Of a DNA stretch of 64,000 bases, positions 4,536-61,795 are shown piece after piece; within the stretch, counting starts at the first letter, position 1, and each line of letters starts with the position of its first letter. The DNA comes from Octopus sinensis (taxonomy: Eukaryota). The translations under genes were made by a program, and so were the position numbers. The notes beneath the pieces were generated by a model. The model ran no database searches. It was not told the origin of the DNA and was given only the letters and a program-made list of their open reading frames with translations. Location: assembly GCF_006345805.1 (NCBI RefSeq), contig NC_043004.1, positions 86,490,001 through 86,554,000 of the forward strand, given 5' to 3'.

Positions 4536-5362
4536 GCATTTTATTGTGCCTGGTGTGAAAAATAGTTTTATAATTATGATTTTGCTTCCAAAATATTCTT
4601 GCTGTTCTATTGCCTCAAGGCTGGGATGATTTCACTGTCAACTTTGATGTATCTATTTAGGATCTCTCTTCTCTTTGACCCTTGATGTGCAGTCTTGTTC
4701 TGTTATTTTAGACACACCTGTGTCTAATATTTCTTTTCACACTTACATAGGTTAATAAATAACTATGCTCATAATATGGAAATATTTAATATGATACTCC
4801 ACTCCACACACTCACTCATAGGTCATGGTGTGTACTAAATGACAGACGCAAAAACAATTCTCAACGAATCATTATTTACCTCTCAGTTGGAGAAAGTAAA
4901 CAAAACCTAATGGCGATTGTTTGCAACTCTCAAAGAAAAGAGGAGATAATTCCAATAAAGAAAGAAAGAATTTCTCAGTTAATTGAATTTCCACATTTAA
5001 GGTGAGAGTAGACCTGATCTTCGTTAGCATGCAAAGTGACAACTATAGACGTGTTCCAGATTTATTAGACCTCATCTGTAAATCATAATCATTTCAAATT
5101 TGCTCTAACCAGATGACAGAGATTTTCTGAGTAGGAAATGAGGATTGGTGAAGAATGTTGTTGTCCAGTATAATTTACCTAGTTACACAAAGTGATGTGA
5201 ACCAAGGTAAATTATTGAAATGGATCAATAACATAAATTTTAGCTAATTCCTGTAAAAGAAATTTAAATTTCGTTGACATTAATTCCTAATCCTTTGATA
5301 TTCTCTCCCCTTTTCGTTGGGAATCATTAACAAGTAGCATTAGGTTCCCTGCTCCAACGACG

Positions 5363-5700
5363 AAATGCTCAGCGGTATTTCGTCTTCTGCTATGTTCTGA
5401 GTTCAAATTCCGCCGAGGTCGACTTTGCTTTTCATCCTTTCAGGGTCGATTAAATAAGTACCAGTTACGCACTGGGGTCGATGTAATCGACTTAATCCCT
5501 TTGTCTGTCCTTGTTTGTCCTCTCTGTGTTTAGCCCCTTGTGGGTAGTAAAGAAATAGGTATTTCGTCTGTCTGAACGTTCTGAGTTCAAATTCCGCCGG
5601 GGTCGATAAATTAAGTACCAGTTACGCACTGGGAGGGGTCAATGTAATCGACTAGTCTCCTCCCACCAAATTTCAATTCTTGTACCTTTAGGAGAAAGGA
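5363..5700 (+). mobile_element. SINE family B (tRNA-derived, Deu/Nin-like central domain), dimer
   Basis: B-box gagttcaaattcc and central gc(c/t)tttcatcctttc(g/a)gggtcgat...aagtaccag. The tail agtaaagaaatag runs straight into a second copy. Confidence 0.85.
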
Positions 5701-6869: not shown

Positions 6870-7320
6870 GAGGCTAATTGACAGAATCGTTAACGCTTCG
6901 GACAAAATGCTTTACGGTAATTCTTTTGGCTCTTAACGTTCTGAGTTCAGATCCCGCAGAGGTCGTCTTTGGCTTTCATCCTTTCAGGATCGATAAAATA
7001 AAGTACTAGTCAAGTAATGGTGTTAATGTAATCGACTTGTCCCCACCCCTCAAAGTTTCTGGCTTTGTGCCAAAATTAGAAATAATTATTGTTATAATTA
7101 AAGTGGCGAGCTGACAGAATCGTTAGCACCCCCAAACAAAATATATAGCAGCATTTCGTCTGCCTTTACGTTCTGAGTTCATATTCCGCTTAGGTCGATT
7201 TTGCCTATCATTCTTTTTGGATCGATAAAATAAGTACCAGTTGAGTACTAGAGTTGATGTATTCGATTCATCCCCTCCCTCGAATATGCTGGCCTTGTGC
7301 CAAAATTTGAAACCATTATT
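6870..7320 (+). mobile_element. SINE family B, two adjacent copies
   Basis: cagaatcgtta...gagttca...tcatcc...gtcgat occurs twice. Confidence 0.8.
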
Positions 7321-9632
7321 ATTATTATTATTATTTGGTTGGGATTGAGTATTTTGGCATGCAATAAAAACTGGTTAATGGCGATCTTTGAGTAAATTTG
7401 TTTTCTTTTGGGATTTAAAAAAAAAGTCATTTGCAAAACAACACAAAAGTGAAAGTGAAAGCAACAATATCTAACGATCTAACGTAATCACACTTTCCTA
7501 AGAGTTCATTTCACAAAAGGATATGTTGGATAATGTCTTAGATACACAATGCGCTTTAAAAACGTTGACGGGTTGGTTACAACTGGGCTAACATTTGATC
7601 GATCAGCGTATATTATTTAGAGTTCATTATTAGCGACGGAAGTGGTGTAGTTCGGAATTGGCAATCTGTATACCTACTTCAAGTGTATATACTATTGAAA
7701 ACCTTCTAAACTGCAGTTTTCGTTTTGAGCAAGTCTCTCTTATCAATAATTTTGAACTAATATTGCTTCTGTTGCCAATAATGACTATTATTTATTTATT
7801 GTAACCTGCCAGACAAATGCAACATCGGTGGCTTTACAATCACTATTTAACTTTATCAGCTGGCAGCTGAGGTTGCTTGGAAGATGGTGCCGTGGATATT
7901 TGCTACTGGTGAAGTTAACAAGCAGAATTCTAGATTTATCAATTCCAGCGCCGCTGCTAAGCAACCTTCCCTGCTCCTGATATTTTTCTGTGCTTTTAAC
8001 ACTACAAGTCTACATGAGAAACTCGCTCAAGATAAATACCGTAATTTAGAAGGCTTTTAATGGTACATACGCATTAAGTATGTATTCTGTTCATTGTTTA
8101 GAATTGCTTTTAAAGGCAGTTGTTCCATACTGAAATGTGACAAACAGTAGCCGCTGTAGTTTACAAACAACCCCCGCTTGCATAATTGACGAACTTTCCA
8201 AATAGCTGACCCACCAGAGCTGTCTTAGCAACATTACAGGTCTCTGAGACAATCAATGTACTGAGATCTGTAGTAGTTTTTTTCTTCTTTTTTTGACAGC
8301 TAACCACAGTATACATAGATCATAATTGGGCCCCTAGCAACTGCTCTGTGTGCTTATTTTTTAAGATGACCCTGTGTTCCATATATGTCGGAATTTCTCC
8401 ATCAGGGTCAAGATTTTTTCCACCACCCCCCTCCGTCTTTTTAGATCCTACGTTTCAAAACAACGGGGCCTTATTAATTGCCTGCAAACCCTCACCGTGC
8501 CTTTGCAGGCAGTAACCACCACTTTTTTTCTCTCCCCTCCCCCCGTAATTTTATTGTATTCCACGTTCTGAAACATTTGTAATTTGCATTTAATTTTTTT
8601 AAAAAAGAATATTTAATTCCATTCGCCTTCATCGCATAATTTTAATTAGTCATTAAATGAAACAATTGTTTTAGAGAGATAATTTATTCATATAACAATT
8701 ATTTGTGAATAGTAATAAATGCTGGACTGAATGAAATATTGAATTAATTCAAAAATACGTAGTTTAACAACGATAACACATTTTAAATTGCAAGCCAGAA
8801 TATCAAGAGAAAATTTAACAACTACATCGTAAATGGAAACTAAAGTATAACAAAAAAAAAAATAGAAAATAGATTTTTAAAAAATATATTTGTAAAAAGG
8901 TATCTTCATAGACGCAGATATGGCTGTGTGGGTAAAAAGTTCGCTTTGCAACCACGTGATTTCAAGTTCAATCCCACCGCGCGACACCGTGGCTTCTATA
9001 GTTCCGGGCCGACCAATGCCTTGTGGGTGAATTTGGTTGACGGAAAGTCTGTGGAAGTTCGTCGCATATGTGTGTACGCGTCTGTTTGTTTCACTACCCA
9101 CCGCTTAACAACCGGTGCTGGTTTGTTTACGTCCCCATAATTTAAATAGTATTTTAATTCATCCACCCCGGGCGGGATTTGAACTTAGAACATAATGAGT
9201 TCCATAAAATACCGCAATGTATTTTTATCCAGTGCTCTGCTGATTCTGCTAGCTCTCCGTCTTGGTGATATCATTAATAAAGGTTTCTAATTTAGGCACA
9301 GGGCCAACAATTTTGAAGGGACGAGATTAATGGATGCCATTGACACTAGTACTTAATTAGTTCTTTGTCTTATCGGCCGCGAAAGGCTAATACACCTCTG
9401 CAGGATTTGATCTTAGAACATAAAGAGCTGGGGGCAAATACCGCAAGGCACTTTTACCGACTCTCTAACGATTCTACCAATTTGCAGCCTTCATATCAAT
9501 AATAACGATGCTCTTAACGATAAAGAATTTTAAACGAATGAAGACTAATTTTGAACAAACGAAGGGCATGTTTGGTTTTAATGTCTGACCACCGTCATTT
9601 GGAGCAAATCGAAATAATTTTATTGTATTATG

Positions 9633-13424: not shown

Positions 13425-13660
13425 TACCTATTTCTTTATTACCCACAAGGGGCTAAACATAGAGGGGACAAACAAGGACAGACATAGGTATTAAGTCGAT
13501 TACATCGACCCCAGTGCGTAACTGGTACTTAATTTATCGACCCCGAAAGGATGAAAGGCAAAGTCGACCTCAGCGGAATTTGAACTCACAACGTTGCACC
13601 AGACGAAATACCGCTAAGCATTTCGCCCGGCACGCTAACGTTTCTGCCAGCTCGCCGCCT
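13425..13660 (-). mobile_element. SINE family B, full length, young
   Basis: Close match to the consensus. Confidence 0.88.
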
Positions 13661-13776
13661 AAATACCGCAATGCATTTTGACCGTCCGATACTTTCTCTC
13701 TCTCTCTCTCCCTCTGGTCATTTATAATTAATCAATCTGTCAAGAGAAAAGACATACATACACATTGTACTGATGT

Positions 13777-21632: not shown

Positions 21633-21949
21633 TTATTGCTCCTTTTTCGTTGCCATTTGTTTCAATTAATTTTGAAAATAAAATTTTTTAAATCGGTAAA
21701 TTACGTAGTTATATTAATTAAGCTGGTATTAGGAACTTAAACTGACATGAAATTTAGATGAAATGTGCATCACGAGGGTTAAATATCCACACCCACCCAA
21801 TTTTTTTCCCTTTGTAAATCCACTCTTCACCCTATGAAAAACTACTACAAACAACAAACCAACTGAACATTCTTGTTATTCGATCTAGTCCAGAGCAAAT
21901 TATTCTCGTGGTCTAAGCTAAATTTTCTTTTCTCTCAAACAATAATAAT

Positions 21950-22500
21950 AATCCTTTCTGCTGGAAGCACAAGACCTCATATTTGGGGGAAGGGATTAAG
22001 TCGATTACATTGACCCCAGTATTTCACTGGTACTTAATTTATCAACTCCGAAAAGATGAAAAGCGAAGTCGACCTCAGCGGAATTTGAACTCAGAACGTA
22101 GCGACTGGCGAAATACCTATTTCTTTACTACCCACAAGGGGCTAAACAAACGGATTGAGTCGATTATATCGACGCCAGTGCGTAACTGGTACTGGAATCG
22201 ACCCCGGAAGGATGAAAGGCAAAGTCGACCTCGGCGGAATTTGAACTCAGAACGTGACGGCAGACGAAATACCGCTAAGCATGCTAACGATTCTGCCAGC
22301 TCGCCGCCTTTAACAACAATACTAATCCTTTCTATAATAGGCACATCGCTTGAAATTTGTGGGGAGGGGACTAGTCTTTTACATCGACGATGGTACTTAA
22401 TTTATCGACTCCGAAACGATGAAAGGCAAAGTCGACTTCGGCGGAATTTTAATTCAGAACTTAAAGACGTTTTTGCCCGGCGTGTTTACTATTCCGCCGG
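21950..22500 (-). mobile_element. SINE family B multimer (3 cores)
   Basis: Three gatgaaa(g)gc.aagtcgac.tc.gcggaattt units. Confidence 0.82.
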
Positions 22501-31155: not shown

Positions 31156-31446
31156 TATATATATCAGTGCTGGAGTCAGTTTGCAACCTCTGTTGCTTAA
31201 AAATAATTAAGCTTAATGTATTCCTATTGTGAATTCTATCTATCATGTTGGATCATGTCTGTTTGGCTTCAACTTTTCAATTTCTTCAATTTTTCAAACA
31301 AGTGATTTCCACAGGAGCAGCCAAACAGAAAAGATCCTTCTTGTTTATTCTACCAAACCTAAATGTAAATTCACTGATTGTTTCTTTTTTTTTTAATACA
31401 GATGTATTATTAATCCTTTCTCCCCCCCTTTTTTTTCTCTTTGTAG

Positions 31447-32216
31447 ATAACTGCTCAAAACGAAAGCGAACTCGTGGAAATCTACCGAAGGAGGCTGTTG
31501 ATTATCTTATGAAATGGCTGTATCAGAACAGATTTCGTGCCTACCCTTGTGAAGAAACAAAGCGAAAGATGGCCAAAGACACTGGTCTGACAATCCAGCA
31601 GGTCAATAACTGGTATATCAATGCTAGGCGTCGTATTCTACCAGCTCTTATATCAAGTGAAGGCAAAGAACCACGAGATTACCGAATCACACGAAGACGT
31701 CTGGCATCTTACTCCTCTGATCAAAGCCCATCTTCACCAGCACCATCATCTCCGGCATCAGCTTCTAGTGGCCTTCCAGCGACTCGTGCCGACAGCCCTG
31801 CACCTCCTTCCAATGCTTCGACTTCATCTTGCCGCCAGACACCAACCCCACCGTCTTCACTGACTCCCACTAGTCGATCGCATCTGGCTCAGCCGCCATA
31901 TTTACCTCTGCCACCCCCTTATTCCTTCAACAGCACCACACCGGATTGCCAAGTTGGTAATGATAATCACGACAGAACATCAGAATCGTTCCAGGACTAT
32001 CAATCAAACCTCTATCATCGTTATCCGCTTCATTTTCATTCTCGTCAGTACGAACCAACTACTGCTGATTACCCGTGCAACCTTATCTACAACAACAGCA
32101 ACCACAATCACAATGTTTTACAAATTGATCCCAACCAACCCACGGACCAGTTGTTACGTAACCGATATGGTAATACAGAGAGCCATTTCCGTGTTCTAGA
32201 ATTTAATATGATATAA
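31447..32216 (+). CDS. TGIF: TGIF-family TALE homeodomain transcription factor, main/terminal coding exon
   Basis: Translation KRKRTRGNLPKEAVDYLMKWLYQNRFRAYPCEETKRKMAKDTGLTIQQVNNWYINARRRILPALISSEGKEPRDYRITRR. It has the TGIF-type AYP three-residue loop and the TGIF-specific C-terminal extension. A polypyrimidine tract plus ttgtag acceptor ends at 31446 (phase 1). A Ser/Pro-rich tail follows, with TAA at 32214-32216. Confidence 0.88.
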
Positions 32217-40391: not shown

Positions 40392-41835
40392 AATTCTGAA
40401 ACGACTTCAGAAGCTAGCAGAAAGAGTGCTACCAGAGAGCCAGTGCGGTTTTAGATCTAACCGCTCAACAATGGATATGATCGTCTCCATTCGTCAACTG
40501 CAAGAAAAATGCCGGGAGCAGCAATTACCACTATAAAGAGCATTTGTCGATCTGACAAAGGCATTTGATACAGTCAGTAGATCAGGACTGCACATGGTGC
40601 TTGGAAAATGTGGCTGTCCCCCAATACTACTGCAGCTCATTGTTTCGTTCCATGATGACATGAAGGCCACCATTCAGTTTGATAGTTTAATATCAGATAG
40701 CTTCAACATCAACAGCGGAATAAAACAAGGTAATGTCCTAGCACCAATCTTTTTCAGCATTTACTTTGCTGTATTGCTGCAGTATGCATTTCAAGAGTTT
40801 CCGGGAGATGTCTGCCTTTGTTGGAGAACTGATGGGTCACACTTTGATCTTTCTAAACTTTGGCCCAATACTAAGATCAATAGAGCAACAATAAGAGACT
40901 TTCTCTTCGCCGACGATGCGGCACTTGTTGCTCACAGTGAATTAACTCTACAAATAATGATGGACCACCTATCATCAGCATGCAAAGCCTTCGGTTTGGT
41001 CATCAGTATAAAGAAGACAGTCATCCTCACTCAGGAGGGCGCAGTGAAAGGCCATATCAAGCTTGAGACAGTGGACAGATTCTACTATCTAGGGTCTATC
41101 ATTTCCTCTACTACTTCACTTGGTGATGAGATTAATGTCAGGATAGGGAAGGCAGCAACAACTGACAAAATGAGTATGGAAGAACAAGAGATTAGACATC
41201 AAGAAAAAGATCAGGATTTATGAAGCATGTGTTCTCAGCACACTTCTCTGTGGATCTGAAACATGAACCTTGTACAGCGGACAGGAAAAGTGCCTCGGTA
41301 TTTTCTGTCAGATACCTCCGCAAGATCTTAGGCCTAACATGGCGCGACAAGGTCACCAATGTTGAAGTGCTGGCGCAGGCGAATCTTCAATGCATGACAG
41401 TTATCTCGTGTACGAGAAGACTGAGGTGGCTGGGGCATGTCAGAATGGATGACCATCGAATCCTGAAGCAACTGTTTTATGGAGAACTGGCCCAGAGGAA
41501 GATCAAAACTGAGGTATAAGGACACTTGCAAAACTAGTTTGTCCAAGTGTGAGTTGGATGTCAGCACCTGGGAAGAGCAGGCTGAGGACAGAACAACATG
41601 GAAGACTGTGGTCAAGGAAGGAACTGCTAGAGAGCAGCTACAGAAACAAACAAGTTGAGAAGCGGCGAAAGGAAAACAACAGAAATGCAGAGCGCCGAGC
41701 CACCCTCTTGGTATGCAAGTACTGTGGCAGGAGCTGTGCTTCAATCATAGCAAGAAGCTGCAAGAGAGGGAGCCCCTGATATTTTCGGTTAAGTGACCTC
41801 TAAGCTAAATTGACCGTCTGCATAGACGAAAAGGG
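40392..41835 (+). mobile_element. 5'-truncated, frameshifted RTE-clade LINE (reverse transcriptase remnant)
   Basis: LAERVLPESQCGFR...FVDLTKAFDTVSR...GIKQGNVLAP...LFADDAALVAH...RRLRWLGHVRM, with frameshifts after about 41160. Confidence 0.92.
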
Positions 41836-46589: not shown

Positions 46590-47282
46590 GTAAATGAAAT
46601 ATTGTTTCTGGTTTAGATGCAAGGTTAGCAAATTTGAGAGAGGGGTTTAGACAATTACATTATTCCTTGTTCCTGAATTTATCAATTTTGAAGAGATGAA
46701 AGGTAAAGTTGACCTTGTCAGGATTTGAACTCAGAACATAAGGTGCTGGAAGAAATACCACAAGGACGTTTTTTTTTCCACCCAACACTAATGATTCTTA
46801 TTTCTTTACTGCCCACAAAGGGCTACACACAGAGGGGACAAACAAAAACAGACAAAGGGATTAAGTTGATTACATTGACCCCCAGTGAAACACTGGTACT
46901 TAATTTATCGACCCTGAAAGGATGAAAGGCAAAGTCAACCTCGGTGGAATTTGAACTCAAGAACGTATTAGCAGACAAAATACTGCTAAGCATTTCACCC
47001 GGCGTGCTAACGATTCCTCCAACACTAATGATTCTGCAGGTCACTGCCTAACAATAATGAAATACTGGTTTCAAATTTTGGCACAAGGCCAGAAATTTCG
47101 GGGGAGGGGTTAAGTCAATTACATCGATCCCTGTACTCAACTGGTACTTATTTTATTGACCCCAAAAGAATGAAAGGCAAAGTCAACCTCGGCAAAATTT
47201 GAACTCAGAATGTAAAGACGGATGAAATGCTCCTAAGCATTTTTCCCTGCATGCTAACAATTCTACCAGTTTACCACTTTAC
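46590..47282 (-). mobile_element. SINE family B multimer/cluster
   Basis: Three cores in the same orientation. Confidence 0.8.
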
Positions 47283-48690: not shown

Positions 48691-49155
48691 TTATCGAAAT
48701 GGTTTTGGATGATTTACAATTTTCTTGTGCTCTGCTAGATGATTAGTCTTGTTGAGTATCAGCGACTCGTTGGATGAATCAACGCTGAGCTTCTTCCTAA
48801 CCTGATACTGTATACTTTTCTTCAGTGCTATGTCTTCTTGTTGTGAATTCAACAAACGAGAGTGAAAGTGACTTGGTCGCACAAATATATCGGGACTGCC
48901 CAATGAATATCTACCAATCTCTGAAGAGAATGTTTGAATTCCACGAACCATTTGAGGGATGGTATTTGTCTTAATTGGTTTCAAGATTTCAAGGAGTTTC
49001 TGATCTGCCAAAATTTTCTCTTTGGTTTTAATTGCAGTATTATTTCGATTAGAACTCAGGAAGTTTGATTTAATCATGCTTTTCTTCCTTACAGAATATT
49101 TGGTGCTATTCGAATGCAAGTTTGGTAATTCTTTTGCCAAATGGTTTTGTTCGCC
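48691..49155 (-). CDS. NSUN7: NSUN7-like terminal coding exon (GEQNHLAKELP...LKPIK...HPKPFR*)
   Basis: Acceptor ttttacag at 49156, phase 0, compatible with the 52292 donor. Open frame of 465 nt in non-repetitive DNA, ending in TAA. LKPIK resembles the recalled human NSUN7 tail. Confidence 0.75.
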   Translation of the reverse strand, partial: GEQNHLAKELPNLHSNSTKYSVRKKSMIKSNFLSSNRNNTAIKTKEKILADQKLLEILKPIKTNTIPQMVRGIQTFSSEIGRYSLGSPDIFVRPSHFHSRLLNSQQEDIALKKSIQYQVRKKLSVDSSNESLILNKTNHLAEHKKIVNHPKPFR

Positions 49156-50228: not shown

Positions 50229-50293
50229 AGAAGATATAACCGCCTGACCCTCCTACTTCTTCACCCAACCAAAATCATGGACATAGTTAATTA

Positions 50294-50958
50294 AGGTGGC
50301 GAGCTGGCAGAATCGTTAGCATGCCGGGCAAAATGCTTAGCGGTATTTCGTCTGTCGCTACATTCTGAGTTCAAATTCCCCTGAGGTTGACTTTGTCTTT
50401 CATCCTTTCAGGGTCGATTAAATAAGTACCAGTTACGCACCGGGGTCGATGTAATCGACTTAATCCCTTTGTCTGTCCTTGTTTGTCCCCTCTGTGTGTA
50501 GCCCCATTTGGGCAGAAAGAAATAAGAAACATTAGCACACCGGGCGGAATGTTTAGTGGTATTTCGTCTGTCGCTACGTTCTGAGTTCAAATTCCGCCGA
50601 GGTTGACTTTGTCTTTCATCTTTTCAGGGTCGATTAAATAAGTACCAGTTAGGCACTGGGGTCAATGTAATCAACTTAATTCGTTTGTCTGTCTTGTTTG
50701 TCCCCTCTGTGTGTAGCCCCATTTGGGCAGAAAGAAATAAGAAACATTAGCACACCGGGCGGAATGTTTAGTGGTATTTCGTCTGTCGCTACGTTCTGAG
50801 TTCAAATTCCGCCGAGGTTGACTTTGTCTTTCATCTTTTCAGGGTCGATTAAATAAGTACCAGTTAGGCACTGGGGTCAATGTAATCAACTTAATTCGTT
50901 TGTCTGTCCTTGTTTGCCTCCTCTGTGTGTAGCCCCTTGTTGGCAGTAAAGAAATAAA
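50294..50958 (+). mobile_element. SINE family B head-to-tail trimer, 215-bp period
   Basis: cattagcacaccgggcggaatg at 50530 and 50745; units 2 and 3 are almost identical. Confidence 0.9.
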
Positions 50959-52291: not shown

Positions 52292-52545
52292 CCCTCGAGC
52301 AATGATTGCTAAGAAGCAACCATTCATGGTAGCTGATGGTTTGAACTTGATGTATTTATCTTGAAGGCCAATCTTATTTTGAATGTCATCTCTGTTGAAT
52401 GGTAAAACAGGAGGAACCACTTTGTAAAGGGAATGACTGGAGTGGACAAATGAGTTGACGTATTCCACAGTCTTTGATACAGCCACTTCATTTTCTAGGT
52501 CATGGATAGATCTGGTCAAGTAGACCACACCTTTCACGTTAGGGA
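52292..52545 (-). CDS. NSUN7: NSUN7-like exon (FPNVKGVVYLTRSIHDLENE...PPVLP...KPSATMNGCFLAIIARG), motif VI region
   Basis: Matches recalled NSUN7 VVYCTCSVFPEENE...SPPVLP...EPSEITNGCFLSILTRE. Acceptor tatttcag (phase 1), donor GGG|GTGAGT (phase 0), 254 nt. Confidence 0.92.
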
Positions 52546-52894
52546 CTGAAATATACAAGAATTTCCAATAGGAACATATGGTGTGTATGTATGTGGGCAT
52601 ATGTATATATATATATAGATATATATACCATAAATCCTCGAGTATAATCTGCATTTTTCCCCCCAAATTTAAAGGTCAAAATCCCTAGTGCGTACTATAT
52701 ACGGGGTTAAAAATGAAAAATACATTCTAGGCAATGTCCAAGTCTCTATTTGCTGTCCGGCAATTTTTATTCAGACGCATTTTGTGATGTCAGGTGCGAA
52801 AACACCTTAAGTTAAGCCTGAAAGCAATGAAGTCATAAAAGAATCATCTGTAGGGTTATTGACTAACTAGCTATCATTGAAACCCACTGTCAAT

Positions 52895-53135
52895 GGAGCT
52901 TCATGGCTTAGTGGTTAGAGTATTGGACTCATGATCATAAGATTGTGGTTTCAGTTCCTGGACCAGGCAACGCATTGTGTCCTTGTGCAAAACACTTCAT
53001 TTCATATTGCTCCAGTCCACTCAGATGGCGAAAATGAGTAACACTGTGACAGACCAGCGTCCCATCCAGGTGGGGACTATATATCCCATGGGAACCAGGA
53101 AGCCGGCCCTTGTAAGTCAGCATAACTTAAGAAGG
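52895..53135 (+). mobile_element. SINE family E (tRNA head, Meta-domain-like gtg(t/c)cttg.gcaa.acacttt motif)
   Basis: tggcttagtggttagag...gtttcagttcctggacc...tgtgtccttgtgcaaaacacttc. Related copies at 56225-56490 (+) and 12765-13080 (-). Confidence 0.65.
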
Positions 53136-53301
53136 CAGCTCTACATTTACTGTCAGCTGAGTGGATCAAAGCAACATGAAATACTTTGTTTATTGTGTGT
53201 GTGTGCATGCACACGCATGTGTTATACGTGTTCTTTTTTTTTGACTCTATGATGGCTGATGATTATCATGCAAAATCAGAAACATCGTCGTGTCTACTCA
53301 C

Positions 53302-53403
53302 AGAGAAGCGAATGCTTGAGGTATTCCATTTCCTCTTTACACAGACCTTCCAGCTGTTCCCTGCTGACACCACCACGTGATAAGGTTTTCAGGACACTGA
53401 TAT
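53302..53403 (-). CDS. NSUN7: NSUN7-like exon (DISVLKTLSRGGVSREQLEGLCKEEMEYLKHSLL)
   Basis: Matches recalled NSUN7 DTEFLKDHSQGGISVDKLHVLAQQQYEQLTHAM. Acceptor cttttcttcag, donor T|GTGAGT, phase 1-1, 102 nt. Too short for the ORF track. Confidence 0.88.
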
Positions 53404-53662
53404 CTGAAGAAAAGAAAGAAGAAATACTACTAGCCTGAAGTGGGTGAGAACAAGATGTCACCAAATGCAGTATTTGTACTTCATTTTTTCGAGCCCAATG
53501 AAATATAAAGCAGAGTTAAATGCAATGGGGTTTGAACTCAGAATATAAAGACCTGGAAGAAATACAGCAATTGTTAAAGTGTTAAACAAAATTTCTTAAT
53601 TTTCTTCTATCTTTTCACATTTTGTACACACTGTCTAACATTGTACTGATTATGCCAGTCCA

Positions 53663-53719
<57 letters not shown>

Positions 53720-53720
<1 letters not shown>

Positions 53721-53920
53721 TTTCAAATTTTACCACAAGGGCAGCAGTTTTGGAGAAGGAGATGAGTCGATTACATCGACCTCAGTGTTCAATAGGTACT
53801 TATTTTATCAACCATGTAAGGATGAAAGGCAAAGTTGACCTCAGCGGAATTTGAACTCAGAACTTAGCGACGGGTGAAATACCGCAAGACATTTCATCCA
53901 GTGTGCTAATGACTCTGCTA
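53720..53920 (-). mobile_element. SINE family B
   Basis: Consensus match. Confidence 0.8.
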
Positions 53921-53924
53921 TAGT

Positions 53925-54044
53925 AATAATGATGATGATGATGATGATGACGATGACGACGACGACGACAATAACAACAACACCACCACCAACAACAACA
54001 ACAACAATAATAATAATGAATGATAATAATAATAATAATAATAA

Positions 54045-54075
<31 letters not shown>

Positions 54076-54083
54076 AAGAAGAA
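53925..54083. repeat. Compound trinucleotide array (GAT/GAC/CAA/AAT/AAG) abutting an NSUN7 donor
   Basis: Directly visible; it ends at the GTGAGT donor (54084-54089). Confidence 0.95.
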
Positions 54084-54089
54084 ACTCAC

Positions 54090-54233
54090 CTTCGCCTTCA
54101 TTAATCACAAAATCAACTGGGCTGTTTAAAGCAGACTTACTACACTTGGCTGTCAACAAGATTATTCTAACAGCTTTAAACTTCTGATCATCTGGAGACA
54201 AATCTAAGAATGATTCTGTCAAGAGTTTTACAT
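54090..54233 (-). CDS. NSUN7: NSUN7-like exon (NVKLLTESFLDLSPDDQKFKAVRIILLTAKCSKSALNSPVDFVINEGE), motif IV region
   Basis: Matches recalled NSUN7 KVKVILLLPRCSGLGVSNPVEFILNEHE. Acceptor ctttctacag, donor G|GTGAGT, phase 1-1, 144 nt. Confidence 0.9.
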
Positions 54234-54278: not shown

Positions 54279-54313
<35 letters not shown>

Positions 54314-54363
54314 GTATTTACATATAAGAGAACAAAATGTACGTACACCGCTATATATATATA

Positions 54364-54448
<85 letters not shown>

Positions 54449-54450
54449 AA

Positions 54451-54691
54451 TACAAAATGGGACAAGAACGCAAAACATCCAGCAGATGATACAAAAAACA
54501 TGGACGGGTCATTCAAAGTCTTTAATCTTCAGTCAAGAACCGGATCATCCTCGCAATTTCGGCTGATTAATCTTGATAATCGAAATTGCGAGGATGATCC
54601 GGTTCTTGACTGATGATTAAAGGCTTTGAATGACCCGTCCATGATTTTTGTATTATCTTTTGGATGTTTTGTGTTCTTGTCCCATTTTGTA
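54451..54691. repeat. Near-perfect ~240-bp palindrome (111-bp arms, ~19-nt spacer) between (TA)n tracts
   Basis: The arm at 54451-54561 reads as the reverse complement of 54581-54691, with few mismatches. Confidence 0.9.
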
Positions 54692-55236: not shown

Positions 55237-55441
55237 TTTTGATGTCCAGAAATTCTAGATTTTTCTGAGCAGATTTAAGATGGTTTGGGTCCACCAGGCC
55301 CCAAATACGACATTTGATGGAGCAGAGCAGACTGGCCATATGAGCTGTAGCTAGGGCTGAACCTATGTTGACATGCATCACTTCATCATCCTCTTGAATC
55401 AAAGGTGCCACAGACAGTGGCGCAATGCAACTTGACTTGTC
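55237..55441 (-). CDS. NSUN7: NSUN7-like exon (DKSSCIAPLSVAPLIQEDDEVMHVNIGSALATAHMASLL...FLDIK)
   Basis: Matches recalled human NSUN7 QDKSRSLAVHSVKALLNMDDDVLMVNTGS. Acceptor cattgtcag (phase 0), donor A|GTATCC (phase 1), 205 nt. Confidence 0.85.
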
Positions 55442-58885: not shown

Positions 58886-59075
58886 AGGCAGTGAGCTGGC
58901 AGAAATGTTAGCACGCCAGGTGAAATGCTTGGCAGTATTTCGTCTGTCTTTACGTTCTGATTTCAAATTCCACCAAGGTCGACTTTGCCTTTCATCCTTT
59001 TGGAGTCGATAAATTAAGTACCAGTTGCGTACTGGGGTCGATCAAATCGACTGCCCGCCCCCCCTCTCCAAACAT
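58886..59075 (+). mobile_element. SINE family B
   Basis: Consensus match. Confidence 0.85.
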
Positions 59076-60430: not shown

Positions 60431-60777
60431 AACATTACTACCAGAATGACTGTAGCACTTACCACCATGCCTTAACAAAGACCACCACTTTCACTACCAC
60501 CATCACCACCACATACCTGTAGTACTATGTTTCCATCTTTAAAGAGTTGGTGTTGCCTCAGATACATTTTAAAAGCAGGTGGGAAGACAAGAACATCGGA
60601 ACAATGACGATCTCTGGCAAATACTTTGCCTCGTTCTGTGTTGTCAGTTGTCAGTACGAAGCCCTCTTCCGAGAAGATATCTATTACTTTCTCTATACTG
60701 AAAAATAAAAAGTAAAAGAAAAAAACTATGTAATGAATGTATATTAGTATGTGTATACATGCATGTATATATATATA

Positions 60778-61569: not shown

Positions 61570-61795
61570 GGGTGGCAAGCTGGCAGAATTGTTAGCACAC
61601 TGGGTGAAATGTTTAGCGGTATTTCATCTGCCGTTATGTTCTGAGTTCAAATTCCGCTGAAGTCGACTTTGCCTTTCATCCTTTCGGGGTCGATTAACTA
61701 GGTACCAGTTATGCCCTGGTGTTGATGTAATCGACTTAATCCCTTTGTTTGTCCCCTCTATGTTTAGCTCCCTGTGGATAATAAAGAAATAAATA
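61570..61795 (+). mobile_element. SINE family B
   Basis: Consensus match. Confidence 0.85.

Follow-up and report, generated by a model that had tools for sequence, protein, structure and literature searches.

In this study, we show that a 64,000-nucleotide stretch of the Octopus sinensis genome (contig NC_043004.1, positions 86,490,001 to 86,554,000; hereafter the window) carries on its minus strand six coding exons of a gene that, judged by its relatives, is the octopus ortholog of NSUN7. Most of the residues that bind S-adenosylmethionine (SAM) or take part in catalysis in active NSUN enzymes are replaced in the encoded protein, and an arginine stands at the position of the nucleophilic cysteine.

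The NSUN7 locus

The six exons run from 60697 to 48691 in window coordinates and encode residues 321–769 in the numbering of the 769-amino-acid Octopus bimaculoides protein, to which they are 88-100% identical per exon in amino acids (tblastn). A scripted check found an AG acceptor at all six exons and a GT donor at the five internal junctions; the exon phases are compatible, and once joined the exons read through 449 codons in a single open frame to a TAA stop. The claim of the initial annotation that frame and splice sites are intact, made for five exons, thus holds, with six coding exons now found in the window; the span on which that annotation was centred, 52292-54233, reaches exactly from the edge of exon D to the edge of exon B and covers exons B–D. 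Residues 1–320 of the O. bimaculoides protein had no tblastn match in the 64-kb window; the four 5' coding exons fall past coordinate 64000, the window ending in the intron that precedes exon Z. The O. bimaculoides locus (L001), covered by ten tblastn segments over 22 kb, has a collinear arrangement, and exon lengths are the same in the two species. The exons and the motifs that they carry are as follows, all on the minus strand.

60517-60697, minus: exon Z, 181 nt, its first base finishing a Ser codon started in the upstream exon outside the window; NSUN5-type ferredoxin-like domain, ...IEKVIDIFSEEGF...KDGNIVLQ, residues about 321-380 (tblastn, AG/GT)
55237-55441, minus: exon A, start of the Rossmann core, with the degenerate motif I and the motif II region
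55346-55378, minus: motif I loop MHVNIGSALAT, the equivalent of NSUN6 Lys248 being Ala (GCT, 55349-55351)
55274-55303, minus: motif II region WGLVDPNHLK, in exon A
54090-54233, minus: exon B, motif III region and motif IV
54202-54216, minus: motif III region ESFLD, with Ser aligned, in a register that is not secure, to the Asp/Glu of active enzymes
54139-54159, minus: motif IV LLTAKCS, with Thr (ACA, 54151-54153) for Asp and the Cys (TGT, 54142-54144) retained
53302-53403, minus: exon C, a helical insert (ISVLKTLSRGGVSREQLEGLCKEEMEYLKHSLL) between motifs IV and VI
52292-52545, minus: exon D, with motif VI, ENE and NGCF; end of the methyltransferase-like domain
52508-52528, minus: motif VI VVYLTRS, with Arg (AGA, 52511-52513) at the nucleophile position
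52487-52495, minus: the invariant ENE, in exon D
52313-52324, minus: the NSUN7-specific NGCF, with the Cys607 codon at 52316-52318
48691-49155, minus: last coding exon, a 154-residue tail predicted to be disordered and ending in the family-conserved ...EHKKIVNHPKPFR, with the TAA stop at 48691-48693

Exon C is 100% identical to its O. bimaculoides counterpart over 31 aligned residues. In the region of exon Z, the O. bimaculoides protein (P0001) matches Pfam PF21148 at residues 311-380 (E=4.6e-14).

Compound trinucleotide microsatellites of great length (CTT, ATT, GTT, GTC, ATC) occupy 53930-54085 and 54300-54470, beginning no more than about 10 bases from the exon B donor, and the exon B acceptor is immediately preceded by a (TA)n/(TG)n tract; the splicing signals of exon B are intact regardless of these flanking repeats. 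A SINE-like (short interspersed element) repeat of about 150-165 bp is present as three tandem copies at 50290-50891, with other copies at 61572-61736, 58893-59056, 46864-47016, 21944-22468, 13494-13665, 7093-7335 and 5361-5492, and the same repeat occurs in the O. bimaculoides NSUN7 introns at 72-90% identity.

Orthology and predicted fold

Among the 86 relatives retrieved by an exhaustive HMMER search with exon D, the best, 96% identical over this exon, is the 769-residue protein named by NCBI 'putative methyltransferase NSUN7 [Octopus bimaculoides]'; other mollusc matches are also named NSUN7. In BLASTP comparisons the octopus protein scored 170–185 bits against NSUN7 of coelacanth, shark, rodent and primate, as against 116 bits to an NSUN5-type enzyme. 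Moreover, octopus and vertebrate NSUN7 have in common derived states that are absent in NSUN5, namely the motif I form h-V-N-x-G-S-G-L-T-x-A-H, the NGCF motif and an HPxPF/W C-terminus, to which the loss of the Asp residues of motifs II and IV can be added as further states of NSUN7 that NSUN5 does not have. Proteins annotated as NSUN7 also form a graded series from molluscs through annelids to amphioxus and Ciona and on to vertebrates. On these comparisons the gene is an NSUN7 ortholog, and the homology originally proposed for it is borne out by the scores, the shared derived states and the name of its 96%-identical relative.

Architecturally, the protein consists of a helical N-domain (read in the sister species), a ferredoxin-like domain, an RsmB/F Rossmann core and a long disordered C-terminal tail. 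An AlphaFold2 model built with the family alignment has a predicted local distance difference test (pLDDT) score of 85–97 over residues ~145–620, with both termini disordered and values <50 for residues 625-766. The best Foldseek match of this model is human NSUN5 (2b9e; template modelling score 0.84 on the target, root-mean-square deviation 3.5 Å), followed by Fmu/RsmB, NOP2, NSUN6 and NSUN4. The model and its structural matches thus point to a class I Rossmann methyltransferase fold, and as modelled the octopus protein keeps a fold of the NSUN5/RsmB type.

The methyltransferase site

The active site was read against the residues that the NSUN6 structure report gives as necessary for catalysis or SAM binding, K248, D266, K271, D293, D323, C326 and C373 (PMC5499824); by mutagenesis, NSUN6 cannot do without K248, D293, D323 or C373 if it is to bind SAM or be active (PMC5499824). 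The octopus residues at five of these positions are listed below.

NSUN6 K248, contacting the SAM carboxyl and cytosine O2: Ala, in a loop without AAPG
NSUN6 D293, contacting the SAM adenine: Ser in the pairwise alignment, where the register is not secure
NSUN6 D323, contacting SAM and cytosine: Thr
NSUN6 C326, general base: Cys, retained
NSUN6 C373, nucleophile: Arg

The initial annotation had singled out a degenerate SAM-binding loop, the loss of D-x-P from motif IV and the replacement of the motif VI cysteine by arginine next to a retained motif IV cysteine, and each of these readings proved accurate. Motif I of octopus NSUN7 is H-V-N-I-G-S-A-L-A where active enzymes have D-x-C-A-A-P-G-x-K, the AAPG being gone and the Lys replaced by Ala; motif IV, which is D-[AP]-x-C in active enzymes, reads T-A-K-C, in which the Cys alone is retained and the residue before it is Lys, compared with Pro in DAPCS and Ser in the DPSCS of NSUN5; and motif VI reads T-R-S in place of Thr-Cys. 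The two codons that had been cited are exact, the minus strand reading AGA (Arg) at 52511–52513 and TGT (Cys) at 54142–54144. At motif III the octopus Ser faces an Asp of human NSUN5 in the pairwise alignment; in the MAFFT alignment some NSUN7 proteins keep Asp or Glu here and one NSUN5-type reference has Ser. At motif II, the equivalent of D266, other NSUN7 proteins have Gly in the MAFFT alignment and octopus has a gapped 'VD' of uncertain register. Every NSUN7 aligned, vertebrate or invertebrate, has lost the motif IV Asp as well as the Lys and the AAPG loop of motif I. The Pfam RsmB/F profile scored below threshold on the spliced octopus core (E=0.14), whereas coelacanth NSUN7 passes.

That the arginine occupies the nucleophile position is supported by three independent alignments. 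A phmmer search of the PDB with the spliced core retrieved human NSUN5 (2b9e, E=6e-6), the sole PDB match below E=0.1 for the window peptide, and paired ILLTAKCSKSA with ILLDPSCSGSG and VVYLTRSIHDLENE with LVYSTCSLCQEENE; a profile of 33 NSUN7 sequences matched 2b9e in the same register (E=1e-46); and in a MAFFT alignment of 36 species the Thr, the Ser and the ENE around the motif VI site are invariant, only the residue between Thr and Ser varying. The same AGA codon is found in O. bimaculoides and Argonauta; an identical codon in three cephalopods rules out a sequencing error as the source of the arginine, in agreement with the earlier judgement that a single base error was unlikely. A-to-I editing of AGA can yield codons for Gly or Arg only, never for Cys, so that rescue of the cysteine by RNA editing is impossible, as had been argued. 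The YCTCS that had been given for human NSUN7 agrees with primate and other mammalian sequences, which read VVYCTCS.

Vertebrate NSUN7 resembles the octopus protein in domain order, fold, a motif I without Lys, a non-acidic motif IV residue (Thr in some), the motif IV Cys, T-x-S with ENE, NGCF, the disordered C-terminal tail and HPxPF/W; the motif II Asp is lost in vertebrate NSUN7 and in the family, at a place where the octopus register is uncertain. It differs in having Cys where octopus has Arg in motif VI, in reading L-P-R-C-S where octopus has T-A-K-C-S, and, in the case of coelacanth, in passing the RsmB/F Pfam threshold. Molluscs other than cephalopods, as well as annelids and vertebrates, have a KDVLARAAAKGLL segment directly after the domain; inspection by eye showed it to be missing from cephalopod NSUN7 (P0001, P0003, P0004). 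Cephalopods retain HPKPFR at the extreme C-terminus, also judged by eye.

The closest solved structure by both sequence and fold is that of NSUN5, which like yeast Rcm1 belongs to the Ynl022c family and is an active 25S/28S rRNA 5-methylcytosine (m5C) methyltransferase. PF21148 is common to NSUN5 and the octopus protein, but NSUN5 keeps IDACAAPGNK, FDLD, DPSCS and TCS, and of these features octopus retains only the motif IV Cys. NSUN6 (5WWS/5WWR) has the Rossmann core in common with it (Foldseek E about 1e-9) and differs by K248, D293, D323 and C373 in place of the octopus Ala, Ser, Thr and Arg, and by a PUA domain that octopus does not have. The Cys607 of NGCF takes the place of the first Phe in the GFF motif of active NSUN enzymes (SGFFVA in NSUN5). 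In NSUN6, Phe458 near the C-terminus contacts the target cytosine (PMC5499824).

The residue at the nucleophile position across NSUN7

Motif VI reads T-R-S in 66 of the 89 family sequences in which it is recognisable, a set that takes in the protein of the window itself and a few isoforms. T-C-S is present in eight of the 89, two of which are NSUN5-type enzymes with a DPSCS motif IV. The residues found at this position are distributed as follows.

Arg: cephalopods (Octopus, Argonauta)
Arg: gastropods (Lottia, Lymnaea, Aplysia, Babylonia, Bulinus, Batillaria, Bradybaena, Gigantopelta)
Arg: bivalves (Mytilus, Dreissena and others)
Arg: annelids Owenia and Capitella, the nemertean Tubulanus, amphioxus and Ciona
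Arg: smelts Osmerus and Hypomesus (P0097-P0099), codon CGC
His: Lingula and Saccoglossus
Asn: the sea star Patiria (P0048), in which the motif IV Cys is also lost and Asp stands there
Cys: jawed vertebrates from sharks to mammals, 109 of 112
Ser: the ratites Apteryx and Dromaius (P0169, P0213) and the frogs Pelodytes and Leptobrachium (P0148, P0085)

Octopods and Mytilus use AGA for the arginine, Lymnaea uses CGG, and Owenia, amphioxus and Osmerus use CGC. Since the codons differ between lineages, it is the amino acid and not the codon that is conserved. CGC is one transition from TGC, so that switches between Cys and Arg are easy in either direction, and the arginine of the smelts shows a recent Cys-to-Arg change within the vertebrates. 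No non-bilaterian or ecdysozoan NSUN7 turned up among the named family members. In the sequences compared, octopus shares its arginine at the nucleophile site with many other animals, and for invertebrate NSUN7 this is the normal state. The initial annotation had cautioned that a widespread T-R motif would lower the novelty of its observation, and that caveat applies.

Selection on the octopus gene

The ratio of non-synonymous to synonymous substitution rates (dN/dS) was calculated by the Nei–Gojobori method against O. bimaculoides over the 449 codons, giving dN 0.029, dS 0.138 and dN/dS 0.21. The methyltransferase-like domain (295 codons) is more constrained: 10 non-synonymous against 23 synonymous differences give it a dN/dS of 0.116 (Fisher p=3.7e-9). 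The C-terminal tail has a value of 0.35. Non-coding divergence between the two species is 0.118 over 6,012 aligned bases, and because this is close to the dS of 0.13-0.16, dS is a fair neutral yardstick. In relatives, Logan contigs of 2.2-3.3 kb represent spliced transcripts for full-length proteins with TRS (P0003, P0090, P0027). Octopus NSUN7 is maintained by purifying selection as a folded protein and is not decaying, as the earlier description of a maintained gene had supposed.

Neighbouring features

Two open reading frames on the opposite strand lie beyond the 3' end of NSUN7.

31245-32216, plus: open reading frame of 323 residues with a TALE-class homeobox (Pfam Homeobox_KN, E=1.6e-15) ahead of a tail rich in Ser and Pro; a neighbouring gene about 16 kb past the NSUN7 3' end
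40594-41223, plus: open reading frame of 209 residues that matches reverse transcriptase (PF00078, E=3.7e-9), probably a LINE (long interspersed element) remnant between NSUN7 and the homeobox gene

Discussion

It has recently been demonstrated that NSUN7 is not an active RNA methyltransferase in mammals. Li et al. (Nat Commun, December 2025; PMC12804707) found by isothermal titration calorimetry that mouse and human NSUN7 fail to bind SAM, and that no m5C site was altered in the Nsun7 knockout. They ascribed the SAM-binding defect to motif IV, in which DAPCS has become LPRCS with the Asp replaced by Leu and sometimes by Val or Thr, and described NSUN7 as conserved 'in vertebrates' with the cysteines of motifs IV and VI both kept (PMC12804707). 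The octopus protein likewise has a non-acidic residue, Thr, for the motif IV Asp. It does not have both cysteines, its motif VI carrying Arg, and possession of the two, which describes vertebrate members only, is not a criterion of orthology. By its residues, octopus NSUN7 is incapable of canonical m5C chemistry, that is, of RNA methylation by the known mechanism, because most of the SAM-binding and catalytic residues are replaced.

The initial annotation had proposed a pseudo-enzyme on the grounds that the motif VI cysteine is lost. The non-catalytic interpretation stands, being supported by multiple lost residues, but the loss of this cysteine is not what made the pseudo-enzyme, since residues for SAM and cytosine binding are lost in all NSUN7 proteins and vertebrate NSUN7 does not bind SAM (PMC12804707). 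Because every NSUN7 examined has degenerate motifs I, II and IV, it is most likely, by parsimony from the alignment, that catalysis was lost once, before the protostome–deuterostome split. After the SAM site had been lost, the nucleophile position would have been free to vary, with arginine being fixed either repeatedly or anciently.

With regard to function, mouse NSUN7 alters the abundance of spermatid transcripts and is required for sperm-tail assembly without producing m5C. By crosslinking and immunoprecipitation (CLIP), Guseva et al. located mouse NSUN7 on mRNAs at a U-rich, C-containing consensus and found that its inactivation stabilises the bound transcripts (PMC12001970). A later report cites knock-in mice with a presumed catalytic-dead NSUN7 variant as fertile and argues for a scaffold role (PMC12785897). 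Among molluscs, the sole support for the role in sperm flagella that the initial annotation had tentatively put forward is a pearl-oyster (Pinctada) nsun7 contig belonging to a spermiogenesis expression cluster (PMC4082630). By analogy with the mouse protein, the most likely role of octopus NSUN7 would be in spermiogenesis, where it would bind RNA or serve as a scaffold without catalysis. Taken as a whole, we hold it to be quite probable that the locus encodes a maintained, folded and catalytically dead NSUN7 ortholog, which would likely have a non-catalytic RNA-binding or scaffold role.

Several points weigh against this interpretation. The motif IV cysteine, Cys479, is invariant and the NGCF cysteine, Cys607, is near-invariant among 33 NSUN7 sequences, and their conservation may leave room for unconventional chemistry. 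The functional part is extrapolated from mouse NSUN7, and the mouse papers conflict, cilium-related mRNAs falling in the knockout in one (PMC12804707) and targets being stabilised on inactivation in the other (PMC12001970). In addition, the window holds the 3' 58% of the NSUN7 coding sequence, the N-terminal part being known from the sister species only.

It is possible that the protein is purely a protein-protein scaffold in flagellar assembly which does not bind RNA, with an arginine of purely structural value, and we regard this as fairly improbable. Mouse proteomics points to a non-enzymatic scaffold function, with proteome changes uncorrelated with the CLIP signal (PMC12785897), and the arginine could fill and stabilise an empty cofactor pocket; however, mouse NSUN7 cross-links to specific mRNA sites with a C-containing consensus (PMC12001970), and T-x-S, ENE and the motif IV Cys have been invariant for >500 million years, which is beyond what filling a pocket needs. 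In the interpretation that we prefer, Arg542 might, speculatively, make a non-covalent contact with RNA, or else stabilise or fill the empty cofactor pocket. A more specific version, which we put forward tentatively and consider rather unlikely as a whole, is that in an ancient pseudo-enzyme selection fixed the arginine in most lineages to give a pocket reading cytosine or phosphate non-covalently, the cysteine of jawed vertebrates, the group behind all published work, being a minority state retained or regained through a single CGC-to-TGC transition.

It seems very unlikely that octopus NSUN7 is still a methyltransferase of a non-canonical kind, acting on RNA or another substrate, for example with a cofactor site that has been remodelled and with Cys479 or Cys607 in the part of the nucleophile. 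The conservation of the two cysteines, the placement of Cys607 at the first Phe of the GFF of active enzymes and the strong constraint on the domain, which indicates that the pocket region matters, would all fit such an enzyme. Yet the octopus protein has substitutions at no fewer than four positions on which NSUN6 depends (those matching K248, D293, D323 and C373), vertebrate NSUN7 with the same degenerate site showed no SAM binding by calorimetry and left m5C unchanged when knocked out (PMC12804707), and the octopus protein falls below the RsmB/F Pfam threshold. There is likewise little chance that the gene is a lineage-specific degenerate paralog of NSUN5, to which the biology of mouse and human NSUN7 would not transfer: older classifications do place NSUN7 within the NSUN5/Ynl022c family, and both the nearest solved structure and the sole Pfam domain identified belong to the NSUN5 type, but the scores to vertebrate NSUN7 exceed that to the NSUN5-type enzyme, and the shared derived states and the graded series from molluscs to vertebrates argue for orthology. 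The weakest alternative, a decaying pseudogene or annotation artefact in which Cys-to-Arg is a lesion, could draw on the very weak Pfam match to the catalytic domain and on introns rich in microsatellites and SINE-like repeats, but is refuted by the selection analysis (dN/dS 0.12-0.21 with dS at the neutral intron rate) and by the intact gene structure, with an uninterrupted frame, canonical splice sites and equal exon lengths in two species, as well as being at odds with an arginine kept across phyla and with full-length spliced transcripts in relatives.

The inactivity of NSUN7 has already been published, and a maintained but catalytically dead octopus ortholog is in keeping with it; what would be modestly new is the conserved invertebrate arginine together with an ancient, shared dead SAM site. 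Our literature search found no published description of the conserved arginine or of the motifs of invertebrate NSUN7. For the octopus genome, these findings mean the annotation of an ordinary ortholog and no anomaly. For the family they have a wider bearing, in view of the fact that the published case for a dead enzyme rests on the mouse and human proteins and was framed as a feature of vertebrates. The sequences collected here suggest that molluscs, annelids and chordates inherited an already degenerate SAM site from their common ancestor. They also suggest that the nucleophilic cysteine is dispensable, which fits the fertile knock-in mouse with its presumed catalytic-dead variant, and that most lineages hold an arginine there under selection. 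NSUN7 may thus offer a natural experiment on what the former active site of a pseudo-methyltransferase does, one example being the reading of RNA in place of its writing.

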